The position numbers were made by a program, and so were the translations under genes. Of a stretch of DNA of 64,000 nucleotides, positions 3,480 to 55,202 are shown one piece after another (within the stretch, counting starts at the first letter, position 1; each line of letters starts with the position of its first letter). Source of the DNA: Octopus sinensis (lineage: Eukaryota); NCBI RefSeq assembly GCF_006345805.1, contig NC_043007.1, forward strand, positions 74,896,001-74,960,000, given 5' to 3'. The notes below the pieces were generated by a model. It saw only the letters and a list, made by a program, of their open reading frames with translations, was not told where the DNA came from and searched no databases.

Positions 3480-3591
3480 GTACTATATATTGACATTAAA
3501 ATATATATGTATGCATGTGTGTGCATGTGTGTGTGTGTCTGTGCATGTGTGCATGTGCTTGTGCATACACACAAATGAATATATATATATA

Positions 3592-4415: not shown

Positions 4416-5041
4416 TGCATGTCTTTTTCAAGATGCCTAGAGTTGCAACAAATATCATGAGAAAGTAATGGTATATTTTTACTATTTAAATTAGTTTCTC
4501 TTTACTCACCACTTTACTAGAATAGGTCACAGATATCAGAGGAAAATCTGTTCAATGAATAGTTCAGTAGAAGTTTTCAACTGCAGACTTATATGTGTGT
4601 TACATACCACTGATGATTTGGGTAGAATGAGACAATTGGGGTGGGGAAACGGTTGTGGGGAAACAGATTATTTTTTTCTTTGGATAACATCAGGTAATAG
4701 AGAGTTGGAGATTTTGGAAATTTCTGGCCTTCCATAAAAACACCTTACATAGGCATACCCCTTGAAAAAGAACTTTCCAGATGCAGATATATAATCAAAC
4801 CTACTGACAGAAGGCTTAAACATGTGTGCATGCACACACACACGCATGCACACACACATGCACACACACACACACACACATACACACACACACACACACA
4901 CACTACATGCATATGCACAAATATATATATAAAAGAATGAGGGAAAGAGAGAGAGAGTGAGTGTGTGAGACATTTCAATTTATTAATTGAATATGGTTGA
5001 CATTAACACATTTTATACCTTTTGTCATTGTTTTTTCACAG

Positions 5042-5207: not shown

Positions 5208-6910
5208 GTATTTATTCTGCACCACCATCAAGTTATATTGACCACTAACATTGATTGATTAGTTCAGCTCTATCAAAGAATTAATAATCATATGTTAGAA
5301 TGGTATTGTATGCAATTTATGTACTCTGTTCAGGTGCTTGAGTATAGTAACTTCATTATGATTATCAATATCCTATTCATCAGGTTTACTTTCAGTAGTT
5401 TTTCTCTGCATCTGTTCTGTTACAGCCTTGAGCCCACCAAAACCTTGTGAGTGGATTTTGCAGACAGAAATTGAAAGAATCCCATAATGTAATTGTTTGT
5501 GTGTGTGTACGTGTGTGTACATGTATATGTGTATACATGTGTGTGTAAATGTATGTGTATGTGCATGTATGTGTGTGTACACATGTGTATGTGCACGTAT
5601 GTGTGTATGTGCTCTTGTCTTTATACTATGGTTGTAAACAAGCATGACAGTCTACATTTGATGTTGTTTGTGAAAAACATGTCTGGCCATGGAGAAATAT
5701 TACTTTGCTTGGAAACAGGTGAAGGTTGGTGATGACAGGAAGGGCATCTGGCTGTAGAAAACATTCTTCAACAAATCCTTTCTGACCCTTGTAGGCATGG
5801 GAAAGTGAATGTTAAATGGTGATGATGTTCAACCTTGCTACAGTGGATTCTACAGTGGTCTGCTTAGAAGTCCATTTTATTCAGCAAACTTTCATGTATC
5901 CTGACCCTAATGCCTTCACTACTAGTTCAACTTCTACTGTTATTGATGCTTAGCCCAGATCAACTTTGACTGAGTAGTCATAAGGTCAAAGGTGTTCTAA
6001 CTGTGATTATCCTGTATTTCTGCAGAACTAGGTCAACATTTCCTAATGTGCTCACGCATTTTTAAGAAGGCAAGGAAAGATTTGAAGAAATTCAGTTGCT
6101 ACTTTTAGCAGGGAAAGCAACCACATAAAGATTCTCTCACTGACTCATACTGATTCTGTTAATGTTTGTTGTTATGTTTCTGGTAATAATATTTTGTATG
6201 AGCTCTTGGTTAAGCTCTTTACCACTAGATGTCCTTCTTGTTATCATCCTTTGTGACATACTCATGTTGATAATGTAAAGCTTATGTCACTTTTCAGCTG
6301 AAATTAATTTATTTGAAGATAACCTCCTTGAGACCAAAAATCTCTCAATATTTTTATAATGTTTTTCAAATCAATCTGCCTGAAACTGCATTTCTTTCTG
6401 TAATATAAATTTCTTGCTTCAAAATTATTGGAATTAAAACTTTTCATCAAAGCATATATTCATTTATGCTCCAAACACCAGCTTGATTATAACAGTTACT
6501 TTACAAACCTAATTATTTTCAAACTTATCTGTAACAAAGGCAGTATGGTTTTACAGAAATATGATAACAAAAAGACTTAATTATTCAAACAAGCCAAGTC
6601 ATATGAGTACAGATATAGGCTTTACTTAAGAATGTAAATAATAACATCTTGATTCACTAAAAATGATTCATTTGTAAATCTTATGGGAAGCATTGGTATC
6701 TTTCATGTTTCCTATCATTTGGCTGTAGTTTCACTTTCTTTAGTACTTTAGTTGCTGCTTTTAGTGGGGAAGGTGACCACATAAACATTGCCTCACTGGC
6801 TCATGCTACCAAAACACTTCTAATCAATTTTTTTTTTTTCATTATACTTTTTTTATTATTATTTCTTTACTTTTCTATCACATGTTTATCAATTTTTTCT
6901 TTTCTTTTAG

Positions 6911-8151: not shown

Positions 8152-8272
8152 GTACTATGAGTTTGAAGTAATCACTCCTGGCTATATGCGACTTGGATGG
8201 GCCAAGGCTTCCTTTGATCCTGGGTGTGAATTGGGAACTGATGGCTTATCCTACGGTTTTGATGGCTTTTTG
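8152..8272 (+). CDS. RyR: RyR exon (SPRY2): YYEFEVITPGYMRLGWAK...SYGFDGFL
   Basis: atctag acceptor, gtaaga donor, phase 2 to 0. Confidence 0.95.
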
Positions 8273-9631: not shown

Positions 9632-9728
9632 GCAAGAAAATGGTTCCAAGGTTCTGAACCTTATGGGAAATGTTGGCAAGCAGGAGATGTTATTGGTTGC
9701 ATGTTAGATCTTAATGATTTTATCATAA
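9632..9728 (+). CDS. RyR: RyR exon (SPRY2): ARKWFQGSEPYGKCWQAGDVIGCMLDLNDFII
   Basis: T-rich tract then aag acceptor, gtaagt donor, phase 0 to 1. Confidence 0.93.
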
Positions 9729-10311: not shown

Positions 10312-10389
10312 CATTCTCCTTAAATGGTGAATTAATGATGGACGCCTTAGGCCAAGAGATAGCTTTCCGGGATATCGAAACAAATGAAG
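10312..10389 (+). CDS. RyR: RyR exon (SPRY2): FSLNGELMMDALGQEIAFRDIETNE
   Basis: ttttcag acceptor, g|gtaact donor, phase 1 to 1. Confidence 0.93.
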
Positions 10390-10612: not shown

Positions 10613-10671
10613 GTTATGTACCTGCTTTCACCCTTGGTGCTCACCAACAAGCCAGAGTCAGTTTTGGGCAG
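10613..10671 (+). CDS. RyR: RyR exon (SPRY2): YVPAFTLGAHQQARVSFGQ
   Basis: ctttctag acceptor, cag|gtaagt donor, phase 1 to 0. Confidence 0.93.
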
Positions 10672-11896: not shown

Positions 11897-11961
11897 GACA
11901 TCAATAAGCTGAAATATTTTACTTGCTATGGTCTCCAGGAAGGTTATGAACCATTCTGTGT
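11897..11961 (+). CDS. RyR: RyR exon: DINKLKYFTCYGLQEGYEPFCV
   Basis: ttgtag acceptor, gtatgt donor, phase 0 to 2; GLQEGYEPF hallmark. Confidence 0.94.
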
Positions 11962-12189
11962 GTATGTATATCTTTTATCATTATCTCTAAGTGTATTAGA
12001 AGTGATATATTTAGTGAAAGCCAATGAATAGTATTTAGTTTAATGCTTCCCATTTCCAGTTCAAATTTCATCCAGATCACCATTTCTTCAAGTCATTTCG
12101 GAGGTGATAAAATACCAATATATTTTGGTTCTTATTCCATTGATTTCAAACATTCACTTGCAGAGAAGTGATTGGGGATTATATACTTA

Positions 12190-12755
12190 TGAAGCTTCAG
12201 CTTTCTAGAGGAGAAAATATGCAAATTAATATTTATGTCGAAATCAAACTCGATTGTGAAGACTTGTTGAAGCACATGAAATCGAAATCAAACTCGGTGA
12301 CTGGCATCCGTTGCTAGTGGAGTGCTAAGAGTACCATATGAGTGAGATCATTGCCAGAGCAACAAGCTGGTCTTCATGCCGATGGCACATTAAACGCACC
12401 ATTCGAGTGTGATCATTACCACATCGCCTTACTAGCACTTGTACTGGTGGCATGTGAAAAAAAAAAAAATTTGAGCGAGGTCGTTGCCAGTCCCGCTGGA
12501 CTGGCTCCTGTGCAGGTGGCACATAAAAAGCACCATTTGAGCGTGGCCGTTGCCAGTACCAACTGGCCCTCATGCCGGTGGCATGTAAAAGCAACCCGCT
12601 ACACTCTCGGAATGGTTGGCATTAGGAAGGGCATCTAGCTGTAGAAACTCTGCCAGATCAGATTGGAATCTGGTTCACTAGACCTCAGTCAAATCGTCCA
12701 ACCCATGCTAGCATGGAAAGCGGACGTTAAATGATGATGATGATGATGATGATGA
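12190..12755 (+). mobile_element. Retroposon with (GAT)n tail (similar copies about 35300-35930 and 57030-57500)
   Basis: Shared gagcgaggtcgttgccagt...gtagaaactctgccagatca...cggacgttaaatgatgatgat. Confidence 0.7.
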
Positions 12756-13442
12756 ACTTTCTTTGAGGCATCCAGATTAGGAAAAGCAATTACAAATAAG
12801 AGCTGAAAGTGGGTCTCTGTCCTTATTCATATAAAACTTACACCATACAGCTTACAGCAAAGATTAATAAGTACATAAGTAACATAATGTGGTATAGTTC
12901 TTCATTCTAAGCAGTAGTGTTGATGAAGTTGCAGAACATAATTCAATTCTTCCCTGAGTAAAAGAGTATCTTTGTCAGGAGAAGTAAGTTGAATGAGTCA
13001 TACTTATCAGTAAAAAAATAATCTCATTATTGTAATCCAACCCATGCCAGCATGGAACATGAACGTTAGATGATGATGATAATGGTGTAATGTATGATCC
13101 TGATGATGAAGGAAGGGAGGGAAATCTATAAATGTTTTGAGGAAACAAAAAAGGCCTTTATGTGATTGCTTGAGTTGCAAGAAATAGCAGTCAAATCTCA
13201 CATCATATTACACCTATCATCTTAAAAGAAGAAAGAGAGCCATTGAATAATGTATTTTAGATACACTATAGAAGCAAAAAAGAGCTGAAGGTTAGCAAGA
13301 TGAAACTTCGAAGTCACTATTCTAATAAAAGTTTGATAAACATGTACTCTATATCGAAAAGGATCAAATAACTCTTCCATTTAATATCAAATTGTTTTTA
13401 AATATAACTTTAAATAAAAACACACATTCACATTGATATATA

Positions 13443-13490
<48 letters not shown>

Positions 13491-13539
13491 ATATATATAT
13501 ATTCCAGATATGAATTTATGTTTTGTTTATCTATTATAG

Positions 13540-13644
13540 AAATATGACAAGACAAATGACACTCTGGTATTCAAAAAATCAACCTATTTTTGAGCCATTG
13601 ACTTCAGACCATTCCCGTTTGGAAGCTGTAAGAATACCTGGAGG
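13540..13644 (+). CDS. RyR: RyR exon: NMTRQMTLWYSKNQPIF...VRIPGG
   Basis: ttatag acceptor, gtatgt donor, phase 2 to 2. Confidence 0.92.
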
Positions 13645-13905
13645 GTATGTATTTCTATAAACATTTTATAGCTATTTTAATTTTGCAAGTTGATAAAGGT
13701 ATATTATGTAATGTTCTTCATAGGCGAGGCTGTGTAGTTAAGAAGCTTTACAGCCATATGGTTTCAGGTCCAGTCTTACTGCGTGGCACCTTGGGGAGTA
13801 TAAGTAGGCTTCATCTCTAAAGAACATATATTACATATATAAATTAGGGAGGGGTGCAGTGTTAGTTTTAATCTTTTATCCTTTACTTGTTTTAGTCACT
13901 GGACT

Positions 13906-13951
<46 letters not shown>

Positions 13952-14372
13952 TCAAGTCTGTTACGTATTCTGTCAATCTCTTTTACTGAACCACTAAGCT
14001 GCCGGAATGTAAATAACCAGCACCGATTGTCAAGTGGTAGTGGGGAAACAAACATAAACACACACATACACACATACACACACATATGTACATGCATATG
14101 ATGTATGCATGTATGTATCTATACAGTAGGTTTCCATGCAGTTTCTGTCTACCAAACCAACTCACAAGGCTTTGGTCAGCCTGGGGCTATAGTAGAAGAC
14201 ACTTGGCAGAACTTGAACTCAGAACGGAAAGACGGAATATCACTAAGCATTTTACCCAGCATGCTAACATTTTTGTTAATTGACTGCTTTATATGGCAAC
14301 TTAATATTAAATATCCTTTTCCCAATTTCTAGATTATTTATTCTAATCTTGATTATTTTTTTGCATTTTCAG

Positions 14373-14492
14373 AACTAACATCACACCAGCATTAAAAATT
14401 TCTTCAAAAAACTTTGGTACTTTGGAACACGTATGCTTGGAATACGTTCGCCTAAGTTTACCAGTAACTTGTATGGAAGAATATGTTGCTAG
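14373..14492 (+). CDS. RyR: RyR exon: TNITPALKISSKNFG...EYVRLSLPVTC
   Basis: ttttcag acceptor, ag|gtaagt donor, phase 2 to 2; RLSLPV hallmark. Confidence 0.93.
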
Positions 14493-14606
14493 GTAAGTAA
14501 AAGCCTACCTTGTCATTAATAATTTATAATGATGCTGTTCACTGGCTCAGGAACCAGAGGTGCAGAGTATACAAGCACACCCACTAAAATTTTGGTTGGG
14601 CAATGA

Positions 14607-14924
14607 GAATGCTTTGAACATCTGCCTGAAATCTTCTGTTGTATCACAGAACAATCAAATAAAAGGTTTAATGGGCACAGATTCGATGTCAGACATGATA
14701 ACAGTAGTTCGACAGAACTTGCCAAACATTTCGTTTCAAATGACTGCAATTTTGAAAAAGATTTGAAAGTGCATATTCTCAGAAAATATTCTGAATCTGC
14801 TTCACTTTCACTACTCAGAATGCATGAGGAGAAATATGTTTGCAGGTTATTAACATCACACCCTGGAGGAATTAATAAAATGACAGGAGAATATCATCAA
14901 ATTTATACAAAACTGTTTGATTAA
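14607..14924 (+). mobile_element. Penelope-like element GIY-YIG endonuclease C-terminal part, stop-free frame
   Basis: TEQSNKRFNGHRFDVR...STELAKHF...DLKVHIL...EEKYVCRLLTSHPGGIN; TAA at 14922-14924. Confidence 0.75.
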
Positions 14925-15644
14925 ATATTCTTCTTTTTCCTTTTCTTTTTTCTTTCTTCTTTTTTTTCTGTCTTTTTCTATTAAATAAATTATAAAATTG
15001 AAACTTAAAGACCAATGATGTCATTCCATCAACGTGTGGACACTGATTGCCCTCGTTCATATTTTAAATTTACATTTCTATAATGGTGGTGGTGGTGGTG
15101 GTGGTGGTGCTGCTGCTGCTGCTGCTGCTCATCCACACAACTAAAGATTTTCTGAGCTCTACTACATTTAAGAGACAATTAAACAAAATGCTTTGAAAGC
15201 AACAGAGAAGAGTTTGGGAAGCTAACAAATCCAGCATAGAAGATCTGAGAGAAGTTTTATCGTAAAAAGTAACCTGTACATAAAATGGCATATGCCAGAT
15301 TTCTCACCAGACATAGCAGAAAAGTTCATACTGAAGTTTTTAGATATGTATGTGCATGTATACTTCTTTAAGCACTTTGCTCCCACTGGAGCACAGACCA
15401 TCAATGACTTTTTTCCCACTGTTCATAACTTTGAATTGTCTTTTCTGCTTCTTTCCACTTAGTTTGTGTCAAGTGTTTCCCTGAATGAAGGCCTTCACTT
15501 CTCACATTATGTTGATTTTGAATTATCAACAATGCTTCTGTAACTTTGTTTTTTTTTTTTCTAAGCAGGGATGTTGGCCATATGCAAACCCATTTTTACC
15601 TCTGGAAAGTGGTAGTTCATAATTTCTTTGCCTTTATTCTTTGA

Positions 15645-15975
15645 AGGCATTTGGCTTTAGTGGTTAAAGCATCGGACTCACAGTCATGAGGTAGTGAGTT
15701 TGATTCTTGGATAAGGCTGTGTGTTGTGTTCTTGAGCAAGACACTTTATTTCATGTTGCTCCAGTTCACTCAGCTGTAGAAATAAGTTACAACATCACTA
15801 GTACCAAGCTGTATCAGCCTTTACCTCTCCCTTGGATAATATTGGTGGTGTGAAAAGGGGAGGCTGGTATGCATGGGCAACTGCTGGCCTTCTATAAACA
15901 CCTTGCCCAGATGTGCTTTGAGGGGAAACTTTTCAGGTGCAATTCCATGATTATTCATGACAAAAGAGGGTCCTT
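15645..15975 (+). mobile_element. tRNA-headed SINE
   Basis: Same family as 55432-55732 (cttgagcaagacactt core, gccaagctgtatcagcc tail). Confidence 0.75.
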
Positions 15976-16561: not shown

Positions 16562-16734
16562 GGACAGAACCATCCAGTCTGAAATAGATCACAAAATGAA
16601 TTTAGAAAATATTCGACGTCATGAAATGGACATTGAAGAGGAGAGAAATGCTTATGCTGATATGCCAGGCCAGAACTACAGCGATGCCAATATAAGTGAT
16701 GCTTCAGTTGAAAAAGGAAGCAAAGTAATTGCTG
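16562..16734 (+). CDS. RyR: RyR exon (SPRY2-SPRY3 linker): DRTIQSEIDHKMNLENIRRHEMD...GSKVIA
   Basis: tttttag acceptor, g|gtaagt donor, open frame, phase 2 to 1 bridges flanking exons; sequence itself is divergent. Confidence 0.85.
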
Positions 16735-19205: not shown

Positions 19206-19899
19206 TTAATCTACATTCTAATGATGGAACTTTGTACTTTGTTAGAAACTAGCCCATTCCTCAGAGGAAGAATTTAAATAATTAAAAGCAGAAGAGAACA
19301 TATATATTCCAAATAAGAAGACAAAGAATGAATTTAATACATCTTTATTAATAGTTGCAATTGTTTCAAAACCATTCTGTTTTTAATGTTGTTACATGAG
19401 AATGTAGATAGCCAGGAGTTCAGGTTGAGTACTGCTATGGAAATTCTGTAATTCTCTACCCTATCAGGGCTCACAATATACTTTTATATATTTAAACAGA
19501 ATCCTAGTTTTTATGATTAAAAAAAATTCTCTAAACAATTGATTACCCCCAAAACCTTCCATAAATGTTGTATTTTCATAGTTCTTTATTTGTTAAAGGA
19601 ATAAGAAAACCATTCTACTCTTTCTATTCTTATTCAAATTTCTCTGAAAACTGAGACTCATTTTCCAATATGTTTATTTTTAAAAACAAAACTGTTTTTA
19701 TTATTTGTCATAATCTTCATAATGTTTCTAAGGATTGTTATTATTCTGTTGATGAATTCTACTTGTGCACAAGCATCCTTGAGTATTTATCACTATTCTT
19801 CTGATCTCAGTCGACAAACTCCAGCTAAGATGTAGTAGCTTAGGCTTCACAATACTAGTTGCTTATCACATAACATCCAATGATGTCTCTATTTTCTCT

Positions 19900-20280
19900 A
19901 TTAACATTATCTGATATGATCTAAATATGATGAAAACTGGTACACATCAGCAATAAATTTTAAATTGAGTGATGGAATCTTGAGCAAAACTACTACACTG
20001 AGGCAAATGATCATTCTATTCATGTTACTTTGCTCTTATTCTGGCTTTTAATTTTAGCCAGCTCTTTGTATATTTTCTACAGTTCTTCCACAGACCCTGC
20101 GCATAGATCTAAATAGCAGATGTTGCTAAGGCAACATATAGGTAGTACTTTAGTATGATTATCTCAATGAGCATGATGAAAAGGCAGCTCAAAACAGAGC
20201 CTTGGTGAACACCTACCTCATAACCTCAAATCTCTTGCTAAATTCACTGTCAATGTAGACTCTAAATACTTTACATTCAT
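19900..20280 (-). mobile_element. RTE-clade reverse transcriptase remnant
   Basis: SEFSKRFEV / VGVHQGSVLS motif on the minus strand. Confidence 0.6.
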
Positions 20281-20444
20281 ACATAATCCTAAAATTTTCC
20301 CAGTGTGGCCTTTACTGAGTTTTAGTTACAGTTAAAAATAACTGCTTTATACATAATCTTTTTTATCACACCTCACTTTCTTATTCCCTACTATAATGCA
20401 AGTAAACTGAGAGATTCCTCCTAGTGCTTATTATTAACTAAGAA

Positions 20445-20885
20445 GAAGGCAGTGAGCTGGCAGAAACGTTAGCATGCTGGGCAAAATGCTTAGCGGTATT
20501 TCGTCTGCCGTTACATTCTGAGTTCAAATTCCGCCGAAGTCGACTTTGCCTTTCATCCTTTCGGGGTCAATAAATTAAGTACCAGTTATTCACTGGGGTT
20601 GATGTAATCGACTTAATCCCTTTCTCTGTCCTTGTTTGTCTGTCCCCTCTATGTTTAGCTCCTTGTGGGCAATAAAGAAATAAGAAATGTTAGCATGCAG
20701 GATGGAATTGCTTAGCAGTATTTCATCTGTCTTTGTGTTCTGAGTTCAAATTCTGCCAAGGTCAACTTTGCCTTTCATCCTTTCAGGGTCGATAAATTAA
20801 GTATGAGTTGCGTACTGGGGTCAATCTAATCAACTGACCCTCTCCCCAAAAATTTCAGGCCCTGTGCCTTGAGTAGAAAAGATTA
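20445..20885 (+). mobile_element. Two tandem SINE copies (ggcagaa family)
   Basis: Two successive agttcaaattc...gtcgactttgcctttcatcc units. Confidence 0.75.
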
Positions 20886-22197: not shown

Positions 22198-23175
22198 ATA
22201 TATATATATATATACAACATATATATATATGTATATATGTATAAGATCCATATATGTGTGTGTATAGTTTTTTCCCAATTATAATCTGCCACATTTTCCA
22301 GTATAACACCAACTTAGAATTTAGTCATTTATAGATGATACAGAAATAGTTTTTTTCTTATTCTCAAACACATGATAATGCTAAGACATAGCGTGATCAG
22401 GATAAATTATCCGTACATCGCAGAAAAATACGTTACCAGCCAGCCATTTATATTTGGTTTAGTAATATTTATGAATTAGCTTGAGAGTTAAATTCACACA
22501 TACATGTGCATACGTATACAGGCACATGCACACACACACACATGCACACACACACACACACATGCATACACACTATCTAAATATTTTATGCTACTTACTA
22601 GGTTAGGCAGTTAGGTATATTTTCTCTGAGAAGTATTCAAAAAGCTATGAAACAGTCCATTAGAAAATTCCCTTCCTCTTTTTTCTACATTTCTATATTA
22701 ATGACAAACAAAGAACGTTTTTACATACTTGTTACTCCCACAGTGTGTCTTCCTAAAACACACACTTATTCAAAGTTGACTCACTGAAGAGCTCATTTGT
22801 TTCAACTGCCTATATTCTTTCTAGAGTAAGTTCAGAAACTCAACAAATGTGGATTTCATCCAGGGGGAAATGGTTTTATCAATAACAAAATTACTACACA
22901 AGGGACACCTTATCTAAAACCAGCATTGAATGTTTTATTGCCAAAACATATGTAAAAGTTAAGGGAGTTCTTAGAAATATCTATACTTATAAATGCATAT
23001 TTGTGTGTATGTGTGGCTGTATCGACTCCCTGATTTATAGACTCAACCCCATTGTAGCCTTTGACCTTTTACTAGCTAAAGGAGTTTTTTAGCCTAATCT
23101 TTACACACTGTTACTTATAACTTTATCTGCTTCAAGTTTCCATTCCCCCAAAATAATAAGATATACATATATATA
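22002..23175 (+). repeat. Direct duplication of about 145 nt (22002-22145 and 23029-23172), each followed by (TA)n
   Basis: cctgatttatagactca...ccccaaaataataagatatacat at an offset of 1027 nt. Confidence 0.85.
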
Positions 23176-23429: not shown

Positions 23430-26400
23430 TCCATATATGTATGGAGATACACAAACACACACACACATACAAATACATACGCACACACACACATACACAC
23501 ACACATACACACACATACACATGCACTCTTTCAGATGAAGGAATAGGATAAGCCCCTGCTTCATTTCGAGACTGAGATCAGTGAAGTAAATTTTCCAGCA
23601 TCTCATTACTTATCTGGAGTTAGTAATTACAATCTCTGCCTCAATAAGCAACTACCTATACTACAATAGCCTTCAGAATCCCTGAAGAGAAAAAAAAACA
23701 TTGTATTTCATTGTTGTCACCAATTAGACTCCCCTATTAACCAACTTCAAAGCATTGGCAGCTTATAATGTAGAAAGCCCATCTTTATCCTTGCAGGCTC
23801 ATGCACAACCTTATGGTATGCAATTGTTGTTTACTCAGAGTAATATTATTTTGTCTTCTATCTACTATGACTAGGGACTACTATTATCCAGCTAAAATTA
23901 CATCAGGCAGCCATGCTTCACATGCAGAATGGTATGTAATCTGATACCATCAAACTAGTTATGTCACCATACAATAACTGCATGGCTGAAATTGCAAATG
24001 CAGCAAATTGCCAACTACCTGAAACCATTATCTTGTCTGCTCTATCGTGGGGAACATCTTATAAAAAGATTGCTGTCACTGCCTAGTCAAAGTATCCAGA
24101 TTACCATAACTGATCAGTGAAGACATAAATATTCTCCTTTTGAAGCCATTTACATAAAGTTGTTTTAAATTCTCTCTTCTCTCACTCTCTACTACTGAGG
24201 ATGGGGATGTGTTCTGTGGCCAAGAAACTAGTAGAACTAAATCAATCTGTTTCCTACACACACACACACACATATGAATCTGCATGTATGTGTACTGGTA
24301 AACAGATACAAAACCACTCTTGTATTTGACTATTTTTCAAAGCAATCCTGTTTGCAAAGGCATATGCAAATACCAGTAGGAGCATTTCAGTATCATGTTC
24401 TCTAGGTTTCTCATTAAATAAGACAGGCAAGCGGTTTTCATGTAAAATAACCAGCTTTACAAAAGCAAAGTTTATGTAACAGGTAATAAAAGAATGTTGG
24501 GCACTGTATTTCAATAGTATGAGTAGCAACCTTCTCAAATAACATTCAGGGAATTGGCCTGAGAACAGCAGTTGAAATGTAAATTTCCTGAGTATTATGC
24601 TTAGCATTACCTCAAAATCACACAAGTAAAATATATAGCAACTCATTCTATAAGCACCAAAATTCAAACCACATACCTAACATCCTCAAGCATGTACCCA
24701 AAGGCATGATGATGAAAATAATCTACCCTTAACCGAGGTGAGGAGTACTAAACTGAGGTACTAACATGCAGCCACCCCATAAAGATGATTATGTACTCAC
24801 CAGTAACAATCATAATATTATTAAATAAACATCTTAACAGTCTGAGTTCAACTTTGCTGTTCACCCTTTCGGGATTGATAAAATGAGTAAGAGTTGAACC
24901 CTAGGGTCAATGTAATCAACTTACTCCTTCCCTCGAAATTGCTGATCTTCTGCCAAAATTTGGATCCAATATTATTAAATAAAGAAATAAAATATAATAT
25001 AGCTGCTATGTAACATTGTTTCAAAACTAACAGAATGAGGAACTTATTCTGTTTTACCATGAAGCACATCTCAATTATTCCATCAGCTGTTCCCACAAAA
25101 ACCAATGCAATGATGACCTTTTGCCCGTCCAGATTATACACAGTGTTATCAAATATTTTAACCTTATTGCATTAAGAACTATCTCTGTAGTTTCAAGTTC
25201 AATTCTATTGTGGGACACTTGAGACAAATATTTCTTGTCTTAGTCTTAGGTCAACCAAAGCTTTGTAAATGAAATTTGGTTGATGGAAACTGTATGAAAG
25301 TCTAGTGGGAGAAGATTCCTGTTTTAGGGTGGAATATTTAACCTTTCATCTGGTTTAATGTCACTGCATACCTTCAGTAGATCAGCCTCAGATTACAGCC
25401 TTCGTGCCTGGTCTCTGGCCTGGAGGTAACTTAAACCCACAAGTTTTTGGAGGCCTTGAAAAAGATCATGGATTCTGCCCTCTTCCTTCTTTGGTTAAGC
25501 TAACTAAGACAGTTAAGACTCAATAAACAATTATTGGTGTATGGAGCTCTTTCTGGCACCTGAAAGCAAAGTACATTGAAAATTGTATAATCTGCCTTGA
25601 TAAGATCACAACAATGAAAAAAAATTCCCTTCACAAACTCTACAGGTCTCACAGACCCTCCATTCAGAAATTTCCTCATGAATACAATGGACTACACTGC
25701 TATTGGGAAAATACACCCAAAATTTACTTGGAAATCAAGAGTTGGCATTTCTGATTAAGGCATCAACATTTACAAATAAGTTAAGGTGTTGTGACTTCTG
25801 CTTTACCACAAAACCTCAAACATCATTTAATATTCTACCACAATTCTAAACAGAAAAACTTACTCATGTTTGAACTGTTGTCACAAGTCTAGATTTCTTC
25901 TTCCGAAATTCGATAAAGACTCTCCTGATTCATAAATGATACACTGTGCCATATGGATGTTTCATGATGCCATGAACCATTTCTTATTTCAATCTATAAT
26001 GACTTCATTAGATAAATAAAGCTGGTCTAATAAATTTTTTAGGTATGAATTTGTATTCTTGATTAACTCGTATACACAAATTAAATTCTACATACTTTTA
26101 GCAGAAGGAAATATTGAGCACTTTGTTTTGATACAAAAAAAAAGCACAAATACTCAGCTCTGAGTGCCATGATTGTTATAGCAGAAACAGCTCTAGGTCA
26201 ATGAAGTTGGTTCCTTTTGTCAGTCCTATTTCTTTTGTCATTCAATAAGTTACATACACACACACATACACGCACTAATCTAATCTAATCTAAGAAATTT
26301 AAAAGCTCAAAAAGCATTCAATTTATCCTAATATATTGGTCCCAATTTAATCAGTTTCATAGGTTCTCTTGTGTATTATAATCATTTTGAGAAATAGTTC

Positions 26401-27306
26401 ATTTACCATATTTTCCCCAATATTTGCATGAATATTTATTTTTAACTTATGAAATTTTATAATCTGTTTTTAGCTGTAGTGTTATTTTTTTTATGCAAAT
26501 AGAATTGTAGATTATTTGTTTTAGCAAAAGAATTTCTTTCAAACACATTAGTTGAATGTATTGAAATATTCATTTAAAAACTGTTCAAATCAATTTCCTT
26601 ATTAATAAGTTCCATCAGTTTTTTTTTTTTTTCTATGTAACTTAAATACTTGTACACAACATTGTATGGCAACTGATCCATTTGTTTGTAGCTGTCTCTC
26701 TTAAGTAACCAATATAAATGTACAACCAATCACTTTAAGTCAGTATATGAGCTTCACTCTAATACAGGGAATATAAAAATAACGCAGATGATTAAAAACA
26801 ATTATAGCTGATTATAATGAGAATTAGTTTGTACAATAAATTATCAAGAAACAACTTTATAAATGCTGCAATATACTTCATATTATACACATTACCTCTT
26901 CATTCTACATTTTTGATACTGTTCTGAACCACTGCCCATGAATTTATATATATTAAAGTTTTCACAAAATATTGTAAATTAAAACATTAAACAGTGAAGG
27001 GGAATTTTTTTAATTATTAAAGTACCACAAATGAAAGAAAATTATGGCCTATCTGAAAAGGAAATATACATAAAAATATCTATACTTCCATGTATGGAAG
27101 ATATCTTTGAAATATAACTTTAATATTAAATGTAAATAATATCATGAAAATTGTTGTATTACAAATTTCACAACTACTAAGGCAGTATTATTATAGCCTG
27201 CCATTGCAACTACAAATGTGTAGATTTGAGCAAGAAACTAGCATGTTGTATATGAATGGTTGACAACCGCATGAAACAAACATTCTGCATGGTTTTTCCT
27301 GGGCAG

Positions 27307-27414
27307 ATACCTTGAAGAGGATAGCAGGGGGTACCTCTGATTCCAGCACTACTGAATCACATCGAGAAGGATCGCTCAACATCAGTGATACTACTGAAAA
27401 GTCTGACGGTGGTA
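27307..27414 (+). CDS. RyR: Candidate RyR cassette exon 1 (108 nt): DTLKRIAGGTSDSSTTESHREGSLNISDTTEKSDGG
   Basis: tttttcctgggcag acceptor, a|gtaagt donor, phase 1 to 1, no stop, GC-richer than flanks, not repeat-derived by eye. Confidence 0.7.
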
Positions 27415-28020
27415 GTAAGTAGATCTAGTCCTAATCTTTGATAGTGATGTTTGTTAATATATATATATATATATGTGTGTGTTGTGTGTATCTTAAACTG
27501 TTGCTGACAAAGTTTTGTAACCCAGACTTCGTTTGGTTAATGTTGAATGGCTGTCATTGTGCTTTATTAAATTCAATAACAACAACAACAATACTAAAAC
27601 CATACTAATTTCTGGAATGCTTCTGAGATGTGAAAAATTTAGTTGCAAACTTGGTTTTACTTGTTGATAAGTTCCACTAAAACTTACCATTCCATGATAC
27701 ATTTTTATGATATTCTATAAAATATGTAAACTTAGAATGTTAGATTTTCATTGTTTTATTTATCACTGTTTGTTTCTAAATCATTAAAGATAAATATATA
27801 TCTTATATGTATATATACATATATATATATATCTTATGCATATCATCATTCATCATCATTTCATTTAATGTTCGTTTTCCATGCTGGCATGGGTTGGATG
27901 GTTTGACAGGAGCTGGCAATGCCAGGAACCATACAGGCTTTGTTGTCTGTTTTGGCATGGTCTCTACAGCTGGATGCCTTTGCTAATGCCAATATATACA
28001 TACATGTATCTTATATGTAT

Positions 28021-36320: not shown

Positions 36321-37377
36321 TGGATATGTAAGTAGAAAGCTCCGAGATGATAGTAACATTGATCACCTAAGAAGTTTATGAAGGACCAATAGCCGAATTA
36401 CTACCTCCCACTTTGAAGGGTATGTGTTTGCAATCCAGGAACAGGAAATATCAACCAAGCACTTGATGCACAAAAGGGATAGAGATGCAAGAAAGCAGTA
36501 AAATGTGACAACTGATGCAGACTTTGTGGAGTTAACACTGAAAATATCACCCATATCATAAGCAGTTGTCTGAAAATGTCATCATGGTACTATCTACCGA
36601 AGACATGATGTGGCTAGGACACTCTATAATGAAATCTGTTGAAAGGATAACCCCGAGGACAAAGAAATGAGAACCCACAATATGGTAGAAGCCACAGCCA
36701 CTCATAATAAAAAAGAGTACTGGTGGAATGTCCCAGTGAAGACCTCAATAAAATGTAAGCACAACAGATCTGATGTAATGGTTTGGGATAGAGAATAGAA
36801 GCTGTACACAACTGTGGAAATTAGCTGCCCAGCAGATGTTAACATAAAGCTGAAGATCAGTGAAAAAGAGAACACATACGCTGAACTATTGAGAAATCTG
36901 AAGTTACTCTATCCAGATTACAAGTTCAGGTTTATACCCGTAATTATTGGGGCATTGGGATATGTAATACACTGCCTAAATACCAATTTTGAGAAATTAA
37001 GCTTCTCGAAACCAAAAAGAAGAAAACTAATTCGAAGACTACATAGCCAATCCATCACTAGAACTGTAAAACTTTCATTTAGATATATACGAGCATGTCT
37101 AGATATGCAACTATATGCATGAGAATACATACATAAAGCAAAACATACAAATCTGCACACATACATACATACATACATACATACATACATACATAATACA
37201 TACATACATACATACATACATACATACATACATACAAACAAACAAACAAACAAACAAACAAACAAACAAAAAATACCCTGCTGTTGATGTTGAAATTCCA
37301 ATGAAGGAGTCTTGATTCTAGGTTAGAAACGAGCTTTTTCTCTGTTGGCAAGAAATCTTGAAATAAACTGAATAATG
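36321..37377 (+). mobile_element. 5'-truncated RLE-type LINE (R4/Dong-like) within (TACA)n
   Basis: CRLCGVNTENITHIISSC knuckle at 36516; RSDVMVWD..VEISCPADVN..EKENTY..FIPVIIGALG endonuclease. Confidence 0.85.
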
Positions 37378-40653: not shown

Positions 40654-41362
40654 GCAAGCACTTAGAACAAACTACATAAAATACAGAATAGACAACACAT
40701 CAGAAAGTGATAAGTGCAGAATCTGTGGACAAAATGGTGAAACCATATGGCATATTACCAGCCAATGTATGCCACTAACCCAGAAGGAATATAAGAGATG
40801 CCACAACAATATAGCCAGCCTTGTCCATTGAACACTTTGCAACAAGTATGATCTTGACAGAGCAAAAAATTGGTACGACCATAAACCTGAAGGCATTGTT
40901 GAAAATAGAAATGCAAAGATCCTTTGGGATTTTATGATGCAGTGCAACCATGAGATAGAGAATAGGAAGTCAGACACAGTCTTAATTGAGAAAGAAAACA
41001 AACTATGCTGGATCATAGATATAGCATGCCCAGCTGACAACAAGGTATGCAATAAGGAAGAAAGAAAAGTCAAGAGATATGACAGGTTAGCTCAGGAAGT
41101 TAAGCAGTTGTGGTCGATGAAAAAGGAAGCAGTAGTACCAATAATTGCCAGAGCCCTGGAGACAGTGAGCAAAAATCTTGAGAAGTACGTGGAACAAATA
41201 AGGGCTGCAATAAGGGTGGAGCACTTGCAGAAAACCGCACTGCTTGGAACCACTTGAATACTCCAGAAGGTGCTCAAAAAATAAGAGGTGTCACTTTAGT
41301 TAACTGGTGGTGAACAGCTGACACTGTAGTACCTCTCCAGCGTTAGAAGCTGTGCAAAGGCG
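40654..41362 (+). mobile_element. 5'-truncated RLE-type LINE (R4/Dong-like) within (TAA)n
   Basis: CRICGQNGETIWHITSQC at 40715; ILWDF..RKSDTVLIEK..IIDIACPAD..K.KRY; two in-frame TGA; (TAA)n on both sides. Confidence 0.88.
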
Positions 41363-44304: not shown

Positions 44305-45082
44305 CACTTCATCATGACTATGCTGGTGACGAATCTCTGTCTGATGCTGATCAAAGAAGAACATCCTTTTTGAGGAACAAAAATGCCCACCATTCTTTAG
44401 ATGAACCAACTCTGCATGATTCTAGTCTTCCCGGCATGAAGACTGCAGCGAGTGAATCTCATTTGGTCGACGGTTATTTAGGAATTGATAATGAGAGAAA
44501 GAAATCTACTTCCAAACTTTCTCTTTTGGCTGAAAAACTCAGTGATCCAAAGGCCAGCAAAGCAGCTAAAAATTCCAAGTCACCATTTGCAACACTGTTT
44601 CGAAGATCAAAATCCAGGGAACCTTCTCCAACTCCTCGAGATGTGAAATCTAAAACACTCGATTCATTGAAACCTGGCAAACTTGGCAGGTCTCAACGCT
44701 CCAACAGATCTATAGCTGGTTCTCAGAATATGCATAAGGGTGATGTGGAAGGTGGCAGCCCTGCAATTAATATCGAAGGTCCTGATGGATTGATTCCATA
44801 TGAGTTTCAGGATGTCAAAGATATACACCATGGATTCAGCAATGTCTCTATGGGTTCCGACTATGAAATGTCCGAGGCTGAAATTGCTGAAATGAATGCC
44901 TTGACTGAAACAATGCATGAATATTACTATTCTGTACGCATCTTCCCTGGGCAGGACCCCAATCAGCTATATGTTGGTTGGGTCACCCCTGGCTTTCACA
45001 TGGGAGGCAGGTCCTTCGATATGAAGAAGATCAGGAATGTCATCATCTCAACCCAAGATGTAGAATATAAATACAGACAAAG
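44305..45082 (+). CDS. RyR: RyR large exon (778 nt): Ser/Lys/Arg-rich linker then SPRY3 (YYYSVRIFPGQDP...VGWVT)
   Basis: ttttcatag acceptor, ag|gtaatc donor, phase 1 to 2; matches ORF 44292-45086. Confidence 0.95.
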
Positions 45083-46252: not shown

Positions 46253-46433
46253 TGTAAGCCGCAAAAATTGCTATATGGTATGTGCAGGTGTATTACAACA
46301 GCGTTACGGTGGAACTCATGAAGAATCAAGCAAAAAATCCTCACCAGGTCTTGTTATTGGCTGCTACATTGATACAGCCACAGGAATATTAAGTTTTAGT
46401 GTTAATGGAAAGGAGGTGGCAAATAAATACCAG
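46253..46433 (+). CDS. RyR: RyR exon (SPRY3): RKNCYMVCAG...GCYIDTATGILSFSVNGKEV
   Basis: catttcag acceptor, cag|gtaatc donor, phase 2 to 0. Confidence 0.95.
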
Positions 46434-47182: not shown

Positions 47183-47269
47183 GTTGAACCTGGAACCAAA
47201 CTTTTTCCAGCTGTAATTTTTGAACCAACAATCAAAGAAATGTTCCAGTTTGAATTGGGACGGACAAAA
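47183..47269 (+). CDS. RyR: RyR exon (SPRY3 end): VEPGTKLFPAVIFEPTIKEMFQFELGRTK
   Basis: tttcag acceptor, gtaaga donor, phase 0 to 0. Confidence 0.95.
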
Positions 47270-49156: not shown

Positions 49157-49343
49157 AATACTTTGCCCTTATCTGCTGCCCTGTTCCGTGGCCCTAAATC
49201 TATCCAACCTGCCTGTCCACCACGCTTAGATTTACAAGTAATAAAACCTTCACATTGGGCAAGAGTCCCAAATACATCCCTCAAATCACACTCAATAAAG
49301 ATGTCAGAAGTACGAGGCTGGAGTTTGGTATGTGATGAACCAG
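49157..49343 (+). CDS. RyR: RyR exon: NTLPLSAALF...CPPRL...WARVPN...GWSLVCDEP
   Basis: tttcag acceptor, g|gtcagt donor, phase 0 to 1. Confidence 0.95.
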
Positions 49344-50886: not shown

Positions 50887-50968
50887 TTTCTATGATGGCT
50901 GTCTACATACCAGAAGAAGATAGTTGTCTTGATGTGCTAGAGCTTATAGAACATCCATTATTACTGAA
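50887..50968 (+). CDS. RyR: RyR exon: SMMAVYIPEEDSCLDVLELIEHPLLL
   Basis: tttcag acceptor, gtaatt donor, phase 1 to 2. Confidence 0.93.
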
Positions 50969-51431: not shown

Positions 51432-52787
51432 TCACCCTGCCATGTAAAAAGCACTGGTGCTGGTGCCATGTAAAAATCACTGGTGCCACATAAAAAGCAC
51501 TGATGCTGGCATCTCATAAAAAGCACTGATGATGGTGCCACAAAAAAAAACACTGGTGATTATGCCTTGGAAAAAGCACCTGTGCTGATACTACATAAAG
51601 AACACTGTTGCTGTTGCATATAGAAAAGCACTGGTTCTGGTTCCACATAAAAGGCACCATTACTGGTACCACATAAAAAGCATTGTTGCTGGTGTCACAT
51701 AGAAAAGCACTGGTGCTGGTGCCACATAAAAGGCACTATTGCTGGTACCACATAAAAGGTACTGTTGCTGGTGTCACATTAAAAACGCCAGTGCTGGTGC
51801 CACATAGAAAAGCACTGGTGCTGGTGCCACATAAAAGGCACTATTGCTGGTACCACATAAAAGGTACTGTTGCTGGTGTCACATTAAAAACGCCAGTGCT
51901 GGTGCCACATAGAAAAGCACTGGTGCTGGTGCCACATAAAAGGCACTATTGCTGGTACCACATAAAAGGTACTGTTGCTGGTGTCACATTAAAAACGCCA
52001 GTGCTGGTGCCACATAGAAAAGCACTGGTGCTGGTGCCACATAAAAGGCACTATTGCTGGTACCACATAAAAGGTACTGTTGCTGGTGTCACATTAAAAA
52101 CGCCAGTGCTGGTGCCACATAGAAAAGCACTGGTGCTGGTGCCACATAAAAGGCACTATTGCTGGTACCACATAAAAGGTACTGTTGCTGGTGTCACATT
52201 AAAAACGCCAGTGCTGGTGCCACATAGAAAAGTACTGGTGCTGGTGCCACATAAAAGGCACTATTGCTGGTACCACATAAAAGGTACTGTTGCTGGTGTC
52301 ACATTAAAAACGCCAGTGCTGGTGCCACATAGAAAAGTACTGGTGCTGGTGCCACATAAAAGGCACTATTGCTGGTACCACATAAAAGTACTGTTGCTGG
52401 TGTCACATTAAAAACGCCAGTGCTGGTGCCACATAGAAAAGTACTGGTGCTGGTGCCACATAAAAGGCACTATTGCTGGTACCACATAAAAGGTACTGTT
52501 GCTGGTGTCACATTAAAAACGCCAGTGCTGGTGCCACATAGAAAAGTACTGGTGCTGGTGCCACATAAAAGGCACTATTGCTGGTACCACATAAAAGGTA
52601 CTGTTGCTGGTGTCACATTAAAAACGCCAGTGCTGGTGCCACATAGAAAAGTACTGGTGCTGGTGCCACATAAAAGGCACTATTGCTGGTACCACATAAA
52701 AGGTACTGTTGCTGGTGTCACATTAAAAACGCCAGTGCTGGTGCCACATAGAAAAGCACTGGTGCTGGTGCCGCATAAAAAGCACAC
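51432..52787 (+). repeat. 26/27-bp monomer array with 105-bp higher-order repeat inside a (GAT)n-tailed retroposon
   Basis: HOR starts at 51791, 51896, 52001, 52106, 52211, 52316, 52420, 52525, 52630, 52735 (partial); decayed monomers 51432-51685; retroposon tail to about 52960. Confidence 0.93.
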
Positions 52788-53144
52788 GATACACTCTGTA
52801 AACTGGTTTGCATTAAGAAAGGCATCCAACTGTAGAAACCATGCTAAAAGAGACAATGGAACAGGTGCAACCTTTGGCCTTACCAATCCCTGTCAAACTA
52901 TTCAACTCATGCCTGCATGGTAAATGGACATTAAATGGTGATGATGATGATGATGAGGCTACAAATGAGAACTGTAGATCAGTTGGGCAGTGTGCAGAAC
53001 AACCAATTAACTCTTGGATTAGATGAGAGTGAAATGAAAGTTGGTAACCAATAAGTCAGCTAGAAAAAGCTGCAATATTTTTTTAACCTGTCTGTCTTTT
53101 ACCCTAATATGCTAATAAAAAGTGTTTCTTGTTCTTATCCACAG

Positions 53145-53266
53145 CTTTCATGCACGAACCCTGGATTTGTACCAAGCAGTATGTTCTCACGGCAATCACC
53201 GAGTTGCCCATGCACTCACAAGACACATTGATGAGAAACAATTATACTATTGTATTGAAAGTGAAT
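53145..53266 (+). CDS. RyR: RyR exon: FHARTLDLYQAVCSHGNHRVAHAL...CIESE
   Basis: ccacag acceptor, gtaagt donor, phase 2 to 1. Confidence 0.95.
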
Positions 53267-54949: not shown

Positions 54950-55126
54950 TGTGTGCATGTATGTGTGTGTGTATGTGTGTGTTTTTGCATGCATGTGTAT
55001 GTTTCTACATGTGTGTATCTGTATATATATGTGTGAATCTGTGTGTATGTGTGTACAAGAGTGAAAAAATTTTTAAGCATTATGTTTATACAAATCTAAA
55101 TTCAACATTTCATTTTAATTAATCAG

Positions 55127-55202
55127 ATATGTCAGGTCCTTTAAGACATGGATTCCATGGTTTACTAATTTCTATGCACATGGAGTATCACAGCAAAGCC
55201 AG
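55127..55202 (+). CDS. RyR: RyR exon: MSGPLRHGFHGLLISMHMEYHSKA
   Basis: aatcag acceptor, ag|gtaaga donor, phase 1 to 2. Confidence 0.93.

Follow-up and report, generated by a model that had tools for sequence, protein, structure and literature searches.

The stretch of DNA analysed here, called the window below, comprises 64,000 nucleotides (nt) of the Octopus sinensis genome (assembly GCF_006345805.1, contig NC_043007.1, positions 74,896,001 to 74,960,000 of the forward strand). It is AT-rich (about 34% G+C), microsatellite-rich animal DNA, and on its + strand is a gene for a ryanodine receptor (RyR), recognised by RyR-repeat and SPRY peptides in stop-to-stop open reading frames (ORFs). In muscle and neurons, RyR is the principal channel for the release of intracellular calcium. 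The present report concerns a candidate cassette exon of 108 nt in a long intron of this gene, and the cluster of RBFOX-type GCATG motifs immediately upstream of it.

The exon chain of the gene was built by tblastn with invertebrate RyR fragments combined with inspection of the splice sites. All its exons lie on the + strand. The 5' part consists of 8152-8272, 9632-9728, 10312-10389, 10613-10671, 11897-11961, 13540-13644, 14373-14492, and 16562-16734, while the 3' part consists of the candidate exon at 27307-27414 followed by 44305-45082, 46253-46433, 47183-47269, 49157-49343, 50887-50968, 53145-53266, and 55127-55202. The chain is stop-free from 13540 on, and also 5' of this position once the donor at 11.9 kb is shifted by 2 nt, to 11961. 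Compared with the PDB, the 812-residue translation matches RyR2 with E = 3e-162 and RyR1 with E = 5e-149. Two blocks align (RyR2 residues 1102-1314 and 1424-1716), and these cover SPRY2, SPRY3, and the following solenoid region, as expected of a RyR gene. Between them, from RyR2 residue 1314 to 1424, an unaligned stretch corresponds to divergent region 2 (DR2) inside SPRY3, which amounts to about 300 residues in the window. In vertebrates DR2 has been linked to isoform-specific coupling, but the region is disordered and little understood. An 84-nt interval at 2551-2634 with a GTAAGT donor encodes TLLALGYHISIQHKKESSRLKMVKLGS, which matches the region of RyR-repeats 1 and 2 in RyR1 ('TLLALGCHVG...'), and we take it to be a real upstream exon outside the mapped chain.

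The candidate exon falls in the unaligned DR2 gap, within the 27.5-kb phase-1 intron 16735-44304. The constitutive exon upstream of it, 16562-16734, is 173 nt long, runs from phase 2 to phase 1 and ends ...NYSDANISDASVEKGSKVIA. Its identity to the corresponding exon of four of the comparison loci introduced below (L003-L005 and L013) is 57-60%. The exon downstream, 44305-45082, is 778 nt long, is entered in phase 1 and encodes what remains of the DR2-like region, together with the beginning of the conserved SPRY3 core. The candidate itself is open in reading frame 2, has phase 1-1 and encodes (D)TLKRIAGGTSDSSTTESHREGSLNISDTTEKSDGG(T), which forms an insert within the DR2-like loop of SPRY3. 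The exon 16562-16734 closes with 1 nt of a codon and 44305-45082 opens with 2 nt. Both introns adjoining the candidate are accordingly in phase 1, and inclusion and skipping both keep the frame, in line with the first-pass annotation, which had described the exon as frame-preserving. Inclusion gives the stop-free sequence ...GSKVIA-D-TLKRIAGGTSDSSTTESHREGSLNISDTTEKSDGG-T-LHHDYAG..., and skipping is predicted to give ...KVIA-A-LHHDYAG..., also in frame. Direct splicing from 14373-14492 to the candidate was ruled out, since this junction is in phase 2 and runs into a stop; the 173-nt exon is thus required between the two, where it restores phase 1.

The acceptor AG at 27305-27306 follows a short, interrupted pyrimidine tract (27292-27306, gtttttcctgggcAG), and the donor at 27415-27420 is a perfect GTAAGT. 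These positions, like those of the GCATG copies below, agree in every case with the ones that had been annotated. On an approximate matrix the acceptor has a rough score of 2.5, whereas the other mapped acceptors, 16 in number, have a median of about 4.4. The G+C content of the exon is 46% vs 29% in the 300-nt flanks, and in this it resembles the real exons of the RyR gene. Serine and threonine make up 37% of the encoded peptide, which bears out its description as Ser/Thr-rich. The RxxS motif (REGS) to which attention had been drawn can be found in the peptide, but 34% of its shuffles have an RxxS too, and the orthologues have ESKGSEN at the aligned place. As a phospho-regulatory site for basophilic kinases it is therefore neither beyond chance nor conserved. 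The insert of 36 residues is probably a disordered segment rich in Ser, Thr, Asp, and Glu, and could plausibly act as a phosphorylation or interaction module in a loop that is unaligned to any solved RyR.

Three copies of GCATG precede the exon on the + strand. The distal copy (27241-27245) is located at -66 from the acceptor and is specific to the window, having no counterpart in the other loci. The middle copy (27269-27273) is found at -38, and the proximal copy is a full RBFOX hexamer, TGCATG, at 27286-27291 (-21/-20). The only match to yUnAy in the 70 nt upstream of the exon is TTGAC at 27260-27264 (+ strand), the putative branch site with its branch A at 27263 (-44), and the hexamer lies between this site and the 3' splice site. 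The locus thereby has (U)GCAUG in the proximal upstream intron, the arrangement of the upstream class of RBFOX targets. There is no GCATG within 300 nt downstream of the exon. The cluster 27241-27291 has no match elsewhere in the window, and at the 16 other mapped exons no GCATG comes within 100 nt of a splice site. With 1.64 copies per kb, the density observed, the Poisson probability of at least three GCATG in a fixed 66-nt stretch is about 2e-4 by our own estimate. Other 51-nt windows with at least three copies are found in five places, three overlapping ones on the + strand (3513-3555 and 54955-54995) and two on the - strand (4829-4861 and 22525-22565), all of them in TG/CA-rich stretches that translate to Cys/His/Val/Thr repeats. 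The copies at 54955-54995 are located 136-172 nt upstream of the exon 55127-55202, inside a TG/CA-type microsatellite, and are probably not comparable to the cluster at the candidate exon.

How often such an exon would arise by chance was estimated for intervals that are open in phase 1, a multiple of 3 and at least 105 nt in length, and that have an acceptor at least as good as that of the candidate and a GTAAGT donor. These thresholds were set at the candidate's own values, which makes the figures somewhat optimistic. Exactly one interval of this class exists in the intron 16735-44304, namely the candidate, against a mean of 0.01 per Markov-3 simulated intron. The pseudo-exon scan returned three intervals on the sense strand, the candidate, 14373-14492, and 2551-2634, the last two of which are RyR exons. 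When the donor is relaxed, the expectation rises to about 0.2-0.6 per simulated intron. Given this rise and the post hoc thresholds, the pseudo-exon statistic is suggestive by itself, not conclusive. Another pseudo-exon in the same intron, 23797-23931 (135 nt), is open in phase 2 only and is thus incompatible with a phase-1 intron. An origin of the exon region from a repeat or transposon was rejected, as the region is unique in the window; the only neighbouring sequence that matches elsewhere in the window is the downstream (TA)n(TG)n microsatellite, located at about 27453-27495.

The decisive part of the case for the exon is comparative. The comparison loci consist of the DNA around genomic ORFs of the big DR2 exon, fetched from the invertebrate entries of a large protein collection, some of them on long contigs. 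Ten further invertebrate loci contain the exon (L001, L003-L009, L013, and L016). They represent nine lineages, L005 and L009 being from the same sample, and are probably molluscan. Three more loci (L010-L012) were left out because the big exon is found at the start of the contig with no upstream sequence. When the exon was searched against proteins in its isoform context, the only matches were genomic ORFs of the 778-nt exon in other species, the closest of them being P0001 (81% identity) on a 1-kb contig without upstream sequence, and a search with the sense and antisense ORFs around the exon gave no matches. A profile search with the exon alignment yielded five genomic ORFs, all of which were put to use, among them four more that led to the loci L006-L009. 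A full HMMER scan of 1.84 billion representatives with this alignment added nothing, and a JGI metagenome scan with it gave no matches.

In L003, L004, and L005 the orthologue of 16562-16734 ends '...NYSDANMSDASIERGSKVIA', and the exon after it has exactly the same kind of beginning as the candidate. With the splice junctions marked by a slash, this exon starts cttag/ATACCCTCAGAAGG... in L003, encoding (D)TLRRLV..., while the window has gcag/ATACCTTGAAGAGG..., encoding (D)TLKRIA.... At the other end the L003-type exon reads ...STESKGSENS..NS.SPKSS-A/gtaagt and the window exon ...TESHREGSLNISDTTEKSDGG-A/gtaagt. The position in the gene is constant; the exon is found after the '...GSKVIA'-type exon (a shorter exon in L001 and L016), and it precedes the big DR2 exon wherever the contig reaches that far. 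The 11 copies are 108 (window), 108, 96, 225, 228, 258, 225, 255, 255, 258, and 243 nt long, and all are multiples of 3 with phase 1-1. The donor is GTAAGT in all copies except those of L001 and L016. The window and L003-L009 have the peptide start DTL[KR]R[IL] in common, and L013 is a more divergent copy (DALRRLVNH...). The window peptide is significantly similar to the exons of L003-L008 (z = 4.4, P = 0.0005, composition-matched shuffles), and with its 36 residues it is a shortened version in which the start and the end are kept and the middle is missing. The orthology of the L001 and L016 exons is read from position, phase and motif. In two pairs of orthologues of equal length the differences are distributed over the three codon positions as 8/8/20 and 7/8/30. 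This excess in the third position indicates that the segment is translated in this frame in those species. The candidate thus combines AG/GT boundaries and a frame that fits both neighbours with conservation by coding substitutions, the constraint being that measured in the orthologues, and as judged from the sequences 27307-27414 is very probably a real and ancient RyR coding exon.

Conservation of the motifs had been proposed as a check in the first-pass annotation, with other cephalopods in mind. The check was run in the invertebrate RyR loci, and nine of ten lineages, the window included, turned out to have retained TGCATG at a distance of -21 to -33 from the acceptor, with L013 as the exception. 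The hexamer is found at -21 in the window, at -28 and -24 in L001 (as GCATGCATGCATG), at -27 in L016, L003, L005, and L009, at -28 in L004, at -33 in L006, and at -26 in L007 and L008. A second GCATG is located some 10 nt further upstream in L003 (-36), L004 (-37), and L006 (-42), comparable to the copy at -38 in the window. The exons of L003-L009 also contain a GCATG at +44 to +53, which the window exon does not have. The hexamer context TGCATGTG is specific to the sense strand in L003, L004, and L006-L008, and the conserved block in L003-L008 exceeds the hexamer (TGTTTrTGCATGyr).

The identity among L003-L008 is 70% in the hexamer block vs 41% beyond about -50, where the intron is not alignable and the figure comes from a forced alignment. 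Over positions -60 to -1 the upstream identity is 0.55 for the candidate exon vs 0.40 and 0.30 for the two neighbouring exons and a background of 0.25-0.30, and the downstream flank of the candidate is not conserved (0.30). The exon therefore displays the marks of a conserved alternative exon, that is a length which is a multiple of 3, symmetric phase and an upstream intron conserved above its neighbours. Apart from L013, the motif is conserved beyond the background of an unalignable distal intron. By our estimate a hexamer would occur by chance in a window of about 20 nt with a probability of about 0.005 per independent lineage, and this one is common to at least three deeply separated groups (the window; L001 and L016; L003-L009). 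The best match to a branch site is distal, at -42 to -52, in the window, L001, L003, and L005-L009 (TTGAC, CTGAC, TTAAC, CTTAC, or CTAAC), and the hexamer thus falls between the branch site and the acceptor AG.

RBFOX proteins (Fox-1 family) bind (U)GCAUG through an RNA-recognition motif that is conserved in metazoans, as is the family itself, and they repress an exon when the motif is located in its upstream intronic flank (PMC2777236). The rule that upstream binding leads to skipping, on which the first-pass annotation relied, is thus established in the literature (PMC2777236; PMC2018636). The symmetry of the exon, its weak pyrimidine tract, the conserved upstream intron and the motif point to a cassette exon, and judging by these features alternative splicing is likely. 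The distal branch site, the hexamer at -21 to -33, the short pyrimidine tract and the strong donor match the architecture of the RBFOX-repressed class, which favours RBFOX-dependent skipping. By analogy with that class, repression by RBFOX is somewhat more probable than not, and it is by the same analogy that we infer the direction of the effect and the tissue pattern.

The 3' splice site would in this case be weak by design, with a distal branch site at about -44, a short and interrupted pyrimidine tract, a UGCAUG at -21 between the branch site and the acceptor, and further GCAUG copies at -38 and -66. In cells expressing an RBFOX-family protein this protein would bind the UGCAUG and GCAUG copies and block the access of SF1 and U2AF to the branch site and the pyrimidine tract, and the exon would be skipped. 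By analogy with other animals these cells are expected to be those of neurons and muscle, the tissues in which RyR too is mainly found. In other cells the strong GTAAGT donor would lead to inclusion of the exon, adding 36 residues to the DR2 loop of SPRY3.

A number of observations weigh against RBFOX-dependent skipping, and some of them touch the exon itself. The splice-site matrices are approximate ones and serve for ranking only, and the thresholds were fixed post hoc. No transcript-derived mollusc RyR that covers the exon region was found in the protein collections searched. The exon peptide of L001 and L016 is not alignable to that of the window (P = 0.35 for L001). GCATG is moreover enriched throughout the window, with 180 copies on both strands (105 sense and 75 antisense) vs 126 +/- 12 in dinucleotide shuffles; the excess comes in part from TG/CA-type microsatellites. 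The general abundance of the motif would suit a decoy, a chance pseudo-exon that happens to lie beside a chance GCATG cluster in a long intron and is never spliced in. Long AT-rich introns do hold many AG...GT intervals (0.22 per simulated intron with the relaxed donor), four relaxed-donor intervals over three phases occur on the window's antisense strand, and the GC-richer patch at the exon is open on that strand too. However, with a GTAAGT donor the chance expectation is only 0.01 per intron, the composition of 27307-27414 is exon-like, and the coincidence of two independent rare signals at one place is improbable by itself. The window peptide is also significantly similar to an exon that is under coding constraint elsewhere and that has the identical position, phase, donor and hexamer. 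A decoy is therefore highly improbable.

If the exon is real, L013 still counts against the proposed regulation. Its exon (4572-4814) has no upstream GCATG; it has GTATG there and a proximal, perfect CTAAC at -20, and a TGCATG is found 42 nt downstream of the donor. Regulation would thus differ or be absent in L013, or the RBFOX site may have been relocated, which would predict the opposite regulation. That L013 manages without the upstream motif fits an exon that is always included, with upstream GCATG copies that either are unused for tissue-specific skipping or only fine-tune the efficiency of splicing. The exon could indeed be constitutive, as it is conserved and under coding constraint in other lineages and has a perfect GTAAGT donor. 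Against this stand the weak acceptor and distal branch site, the usual marks of conserved alternative exons (phase 1-1, length a multiple of 3, upstream intron conservation above the neighbours), and a length that varies from 96 to 258 nt together with fast divergence, as expected of a dispensable, disordered insert. In nine of ten lineages, moreover, the hexamer has stayed between -21 and -33 within an intron that is otherwise scrambled, and this needs a function. A constitutive exon is consequently rather unlikely. The hexamer downstream of the L013 exon is in an enhancer position, and the exon might instead be a regulated cassette in which RBFOX enhances inclusion, or in which another factor binds the UGCAUG block, possibly together with neighbouring GU-rich sequence. 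In L003-L008 the conserved block extends past the hexamer (TGTTTrTGCATGyr), leaving room for more than one factor, and co-factors are known, such as SUP-12, which acts with FOX-1 and ASD-1 at egl-15 (PMC2777236). On the other hand, UGCAUG is highly specific for the metazoan-conserved RNA-recognition motif of RBFOX, and all characterised cases listed in PMC2777236 with the motif in the upstream intron near the branch site are repressive. Another reader or the opposite direction is quite unlikely on this basis.

Taken as a whole, a regulated cassette exon with RBFOX-dependent skipping is the most likely function of 27307-27414, and we consider it probable. A broader and more tentative proposal is that of an ancient, possibly pan-molluscan splicing switch. 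A cassette exon in the DR2 loop would then have kept one UGCAUG since the cephalopods split from the sampled lineages, and excitable cells with RBFOX would have a short-loop channel while other cells would have a long-loop, heavily phosphorylatable one. L013 may in this scheme have moved the motif downstream and thereby inverted the switch. Invertebrates have a single RyR gene, and isoform diversity must thus come from splicing. If the proposed regulation is real, a splice-regulatory element has been conserved across deeply diverged invertebrates, and an old RBFOX target has been found in a calcium-handling gene where it is easily tested. It would also improve mollusc RyR gene models, in which an exon of this size can readily be overlooked within an intron of 27 kb. 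A cassette exon with RBFOX motifs is of an ordinary kind, and the value of the present one is its unusually clean comparative support.

Those comparison loci that are of the mollusc type also contain a 24-nt, phase 1-1 microexon, located after the cassette exon and before the big DR2 exon (L003 7771-7794, L004 7809-7832, L005 6935-6958, L007 9513-9536, L008 9174-9197, and L013 at about 5809-5832). It is perfectly conserved and encodes (T)DEDDLSLT(G). The identity of its upstream intron is 0.77 over -60 to -1, with a long pyrimidine tract containing TGC, and from these features it looks like a regulated microexon of the neural type. In the window intron 16735-44304 it was not found by a simple search at the DNA and peptide levels. 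Tandem arrays are found inside the RyR gene of L004. The first (12110-15705) consists of more than 20 copies with a period of about 155 nt of a segment from a SPRY3 exon ('SVGRKNCYMVCAGDLQQRYG...GLLIGCTIDTSTG'), and the second (19777-20885) repeats the exon 'VQLLSVYIPEVDRCLDILELIEYPHLLE' with a period of about 104 nt. These arrays are either exon-derived satellites or an assembly artefact. In the window, a minisatellite of 105-nt units at 51677-52920, in the intron between 50887-50968 and 53145-53266, displays 83% self-identity at that period and leaves one frame open for 244 and 187 codons (KALVLVPHKRHYCWYHIKGTVAGVTLKTPVLVPHR...). Two ORFs in the intron of the candidate exon, 40832-41254 (141 aa) and 36799-37119 (107 aa), have a common motif (...CPAD..., ...GALG...). 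They look like retrotransposon-derived fragments and would explain some of the GC-rich patches in the intron.

Splicing of RyR has been described in insects, where IASI consists of mutually exclusive exons in SPRY2 and IASII is an optional exon between RyR repeats 3 and 4, and splice variants of mammalian RyR are known as well (PMC3342285). The octopus gene would be similar in that alternative exons, under developmental or tissue control, diversify the cytoplasmic modulatory regions encoded by a single gene, through short inserts that preserve the frame. The place is different, since the window exon is located in the DR2-like loop of SPRY3, corresponding to the insect IDR between SPRY2 and SPRY3 (PMC8301844). 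In the literature searched, no link to RBFOX is described for the insect or mammalian splice sites, and nothing relevant was found on RyR splicing in cephalopods or other molluscs or on RBFOX in octopus. Exons repressed by RBFOX through upstream motifs are textbook knowledge, while a cassette exon in the DR2 loop with a deeply conserved UGCAUG in mollusc-type RyR has no earlier description in that literature.

The closest known system is exon 4 of calcitonin/CGRP, which is repressed by Fox-1 and Fox-2 via UGCAUG at -34, where SF1 is blocked, and at +45 (Zhou et al., 2007; Zhou and Lou, 2008; both in PMC2777236). In both systems a UGCAUG is located about 20-35 nt upstream of the 3' splice site (-34 in calcitonin, -21 in the window and -24 to -33 in the orthologues), and the exonic GCATG at +44 to +53 in L003-L009 corresponds to the site at +45. 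Skipping when RBFOX is present is likewise what is expected for the window exon. The calcitonin exon differs in belonging to another gene and phylum and in being terminal, with a coupling to polyadenylation, and not an internal cassette, and the window exon has no exonic GCATG and two extra intronic copies. Binding, blockade of SF1/U2AF and tissue pattern have been demonstrated for calcitonin exon 4, whereas for the window exon they are expectations from its likeness. Exon 9 of F1-gamma (ATP5C1) is repressed via several upstream GCAUG (PMC2777236, PMC2018636), and further RBFOX-repressed exons are exon 9* of CaV1.2 and exon 5B of egl-15 in C. elegans (PMC2777236). All three resemble the window exon, with its three copies within 66 nt, in having several copies of GCAUG upstream of an internal exon. 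F1-gamma differs in that repression acts on the E complex of the downstream intron. CaV1.2, like RyR, is a channel gene for calcium handling. Finally, egl-15 demonstrates that the mechanism works in invertebrates, presumably by interference with the branch site.

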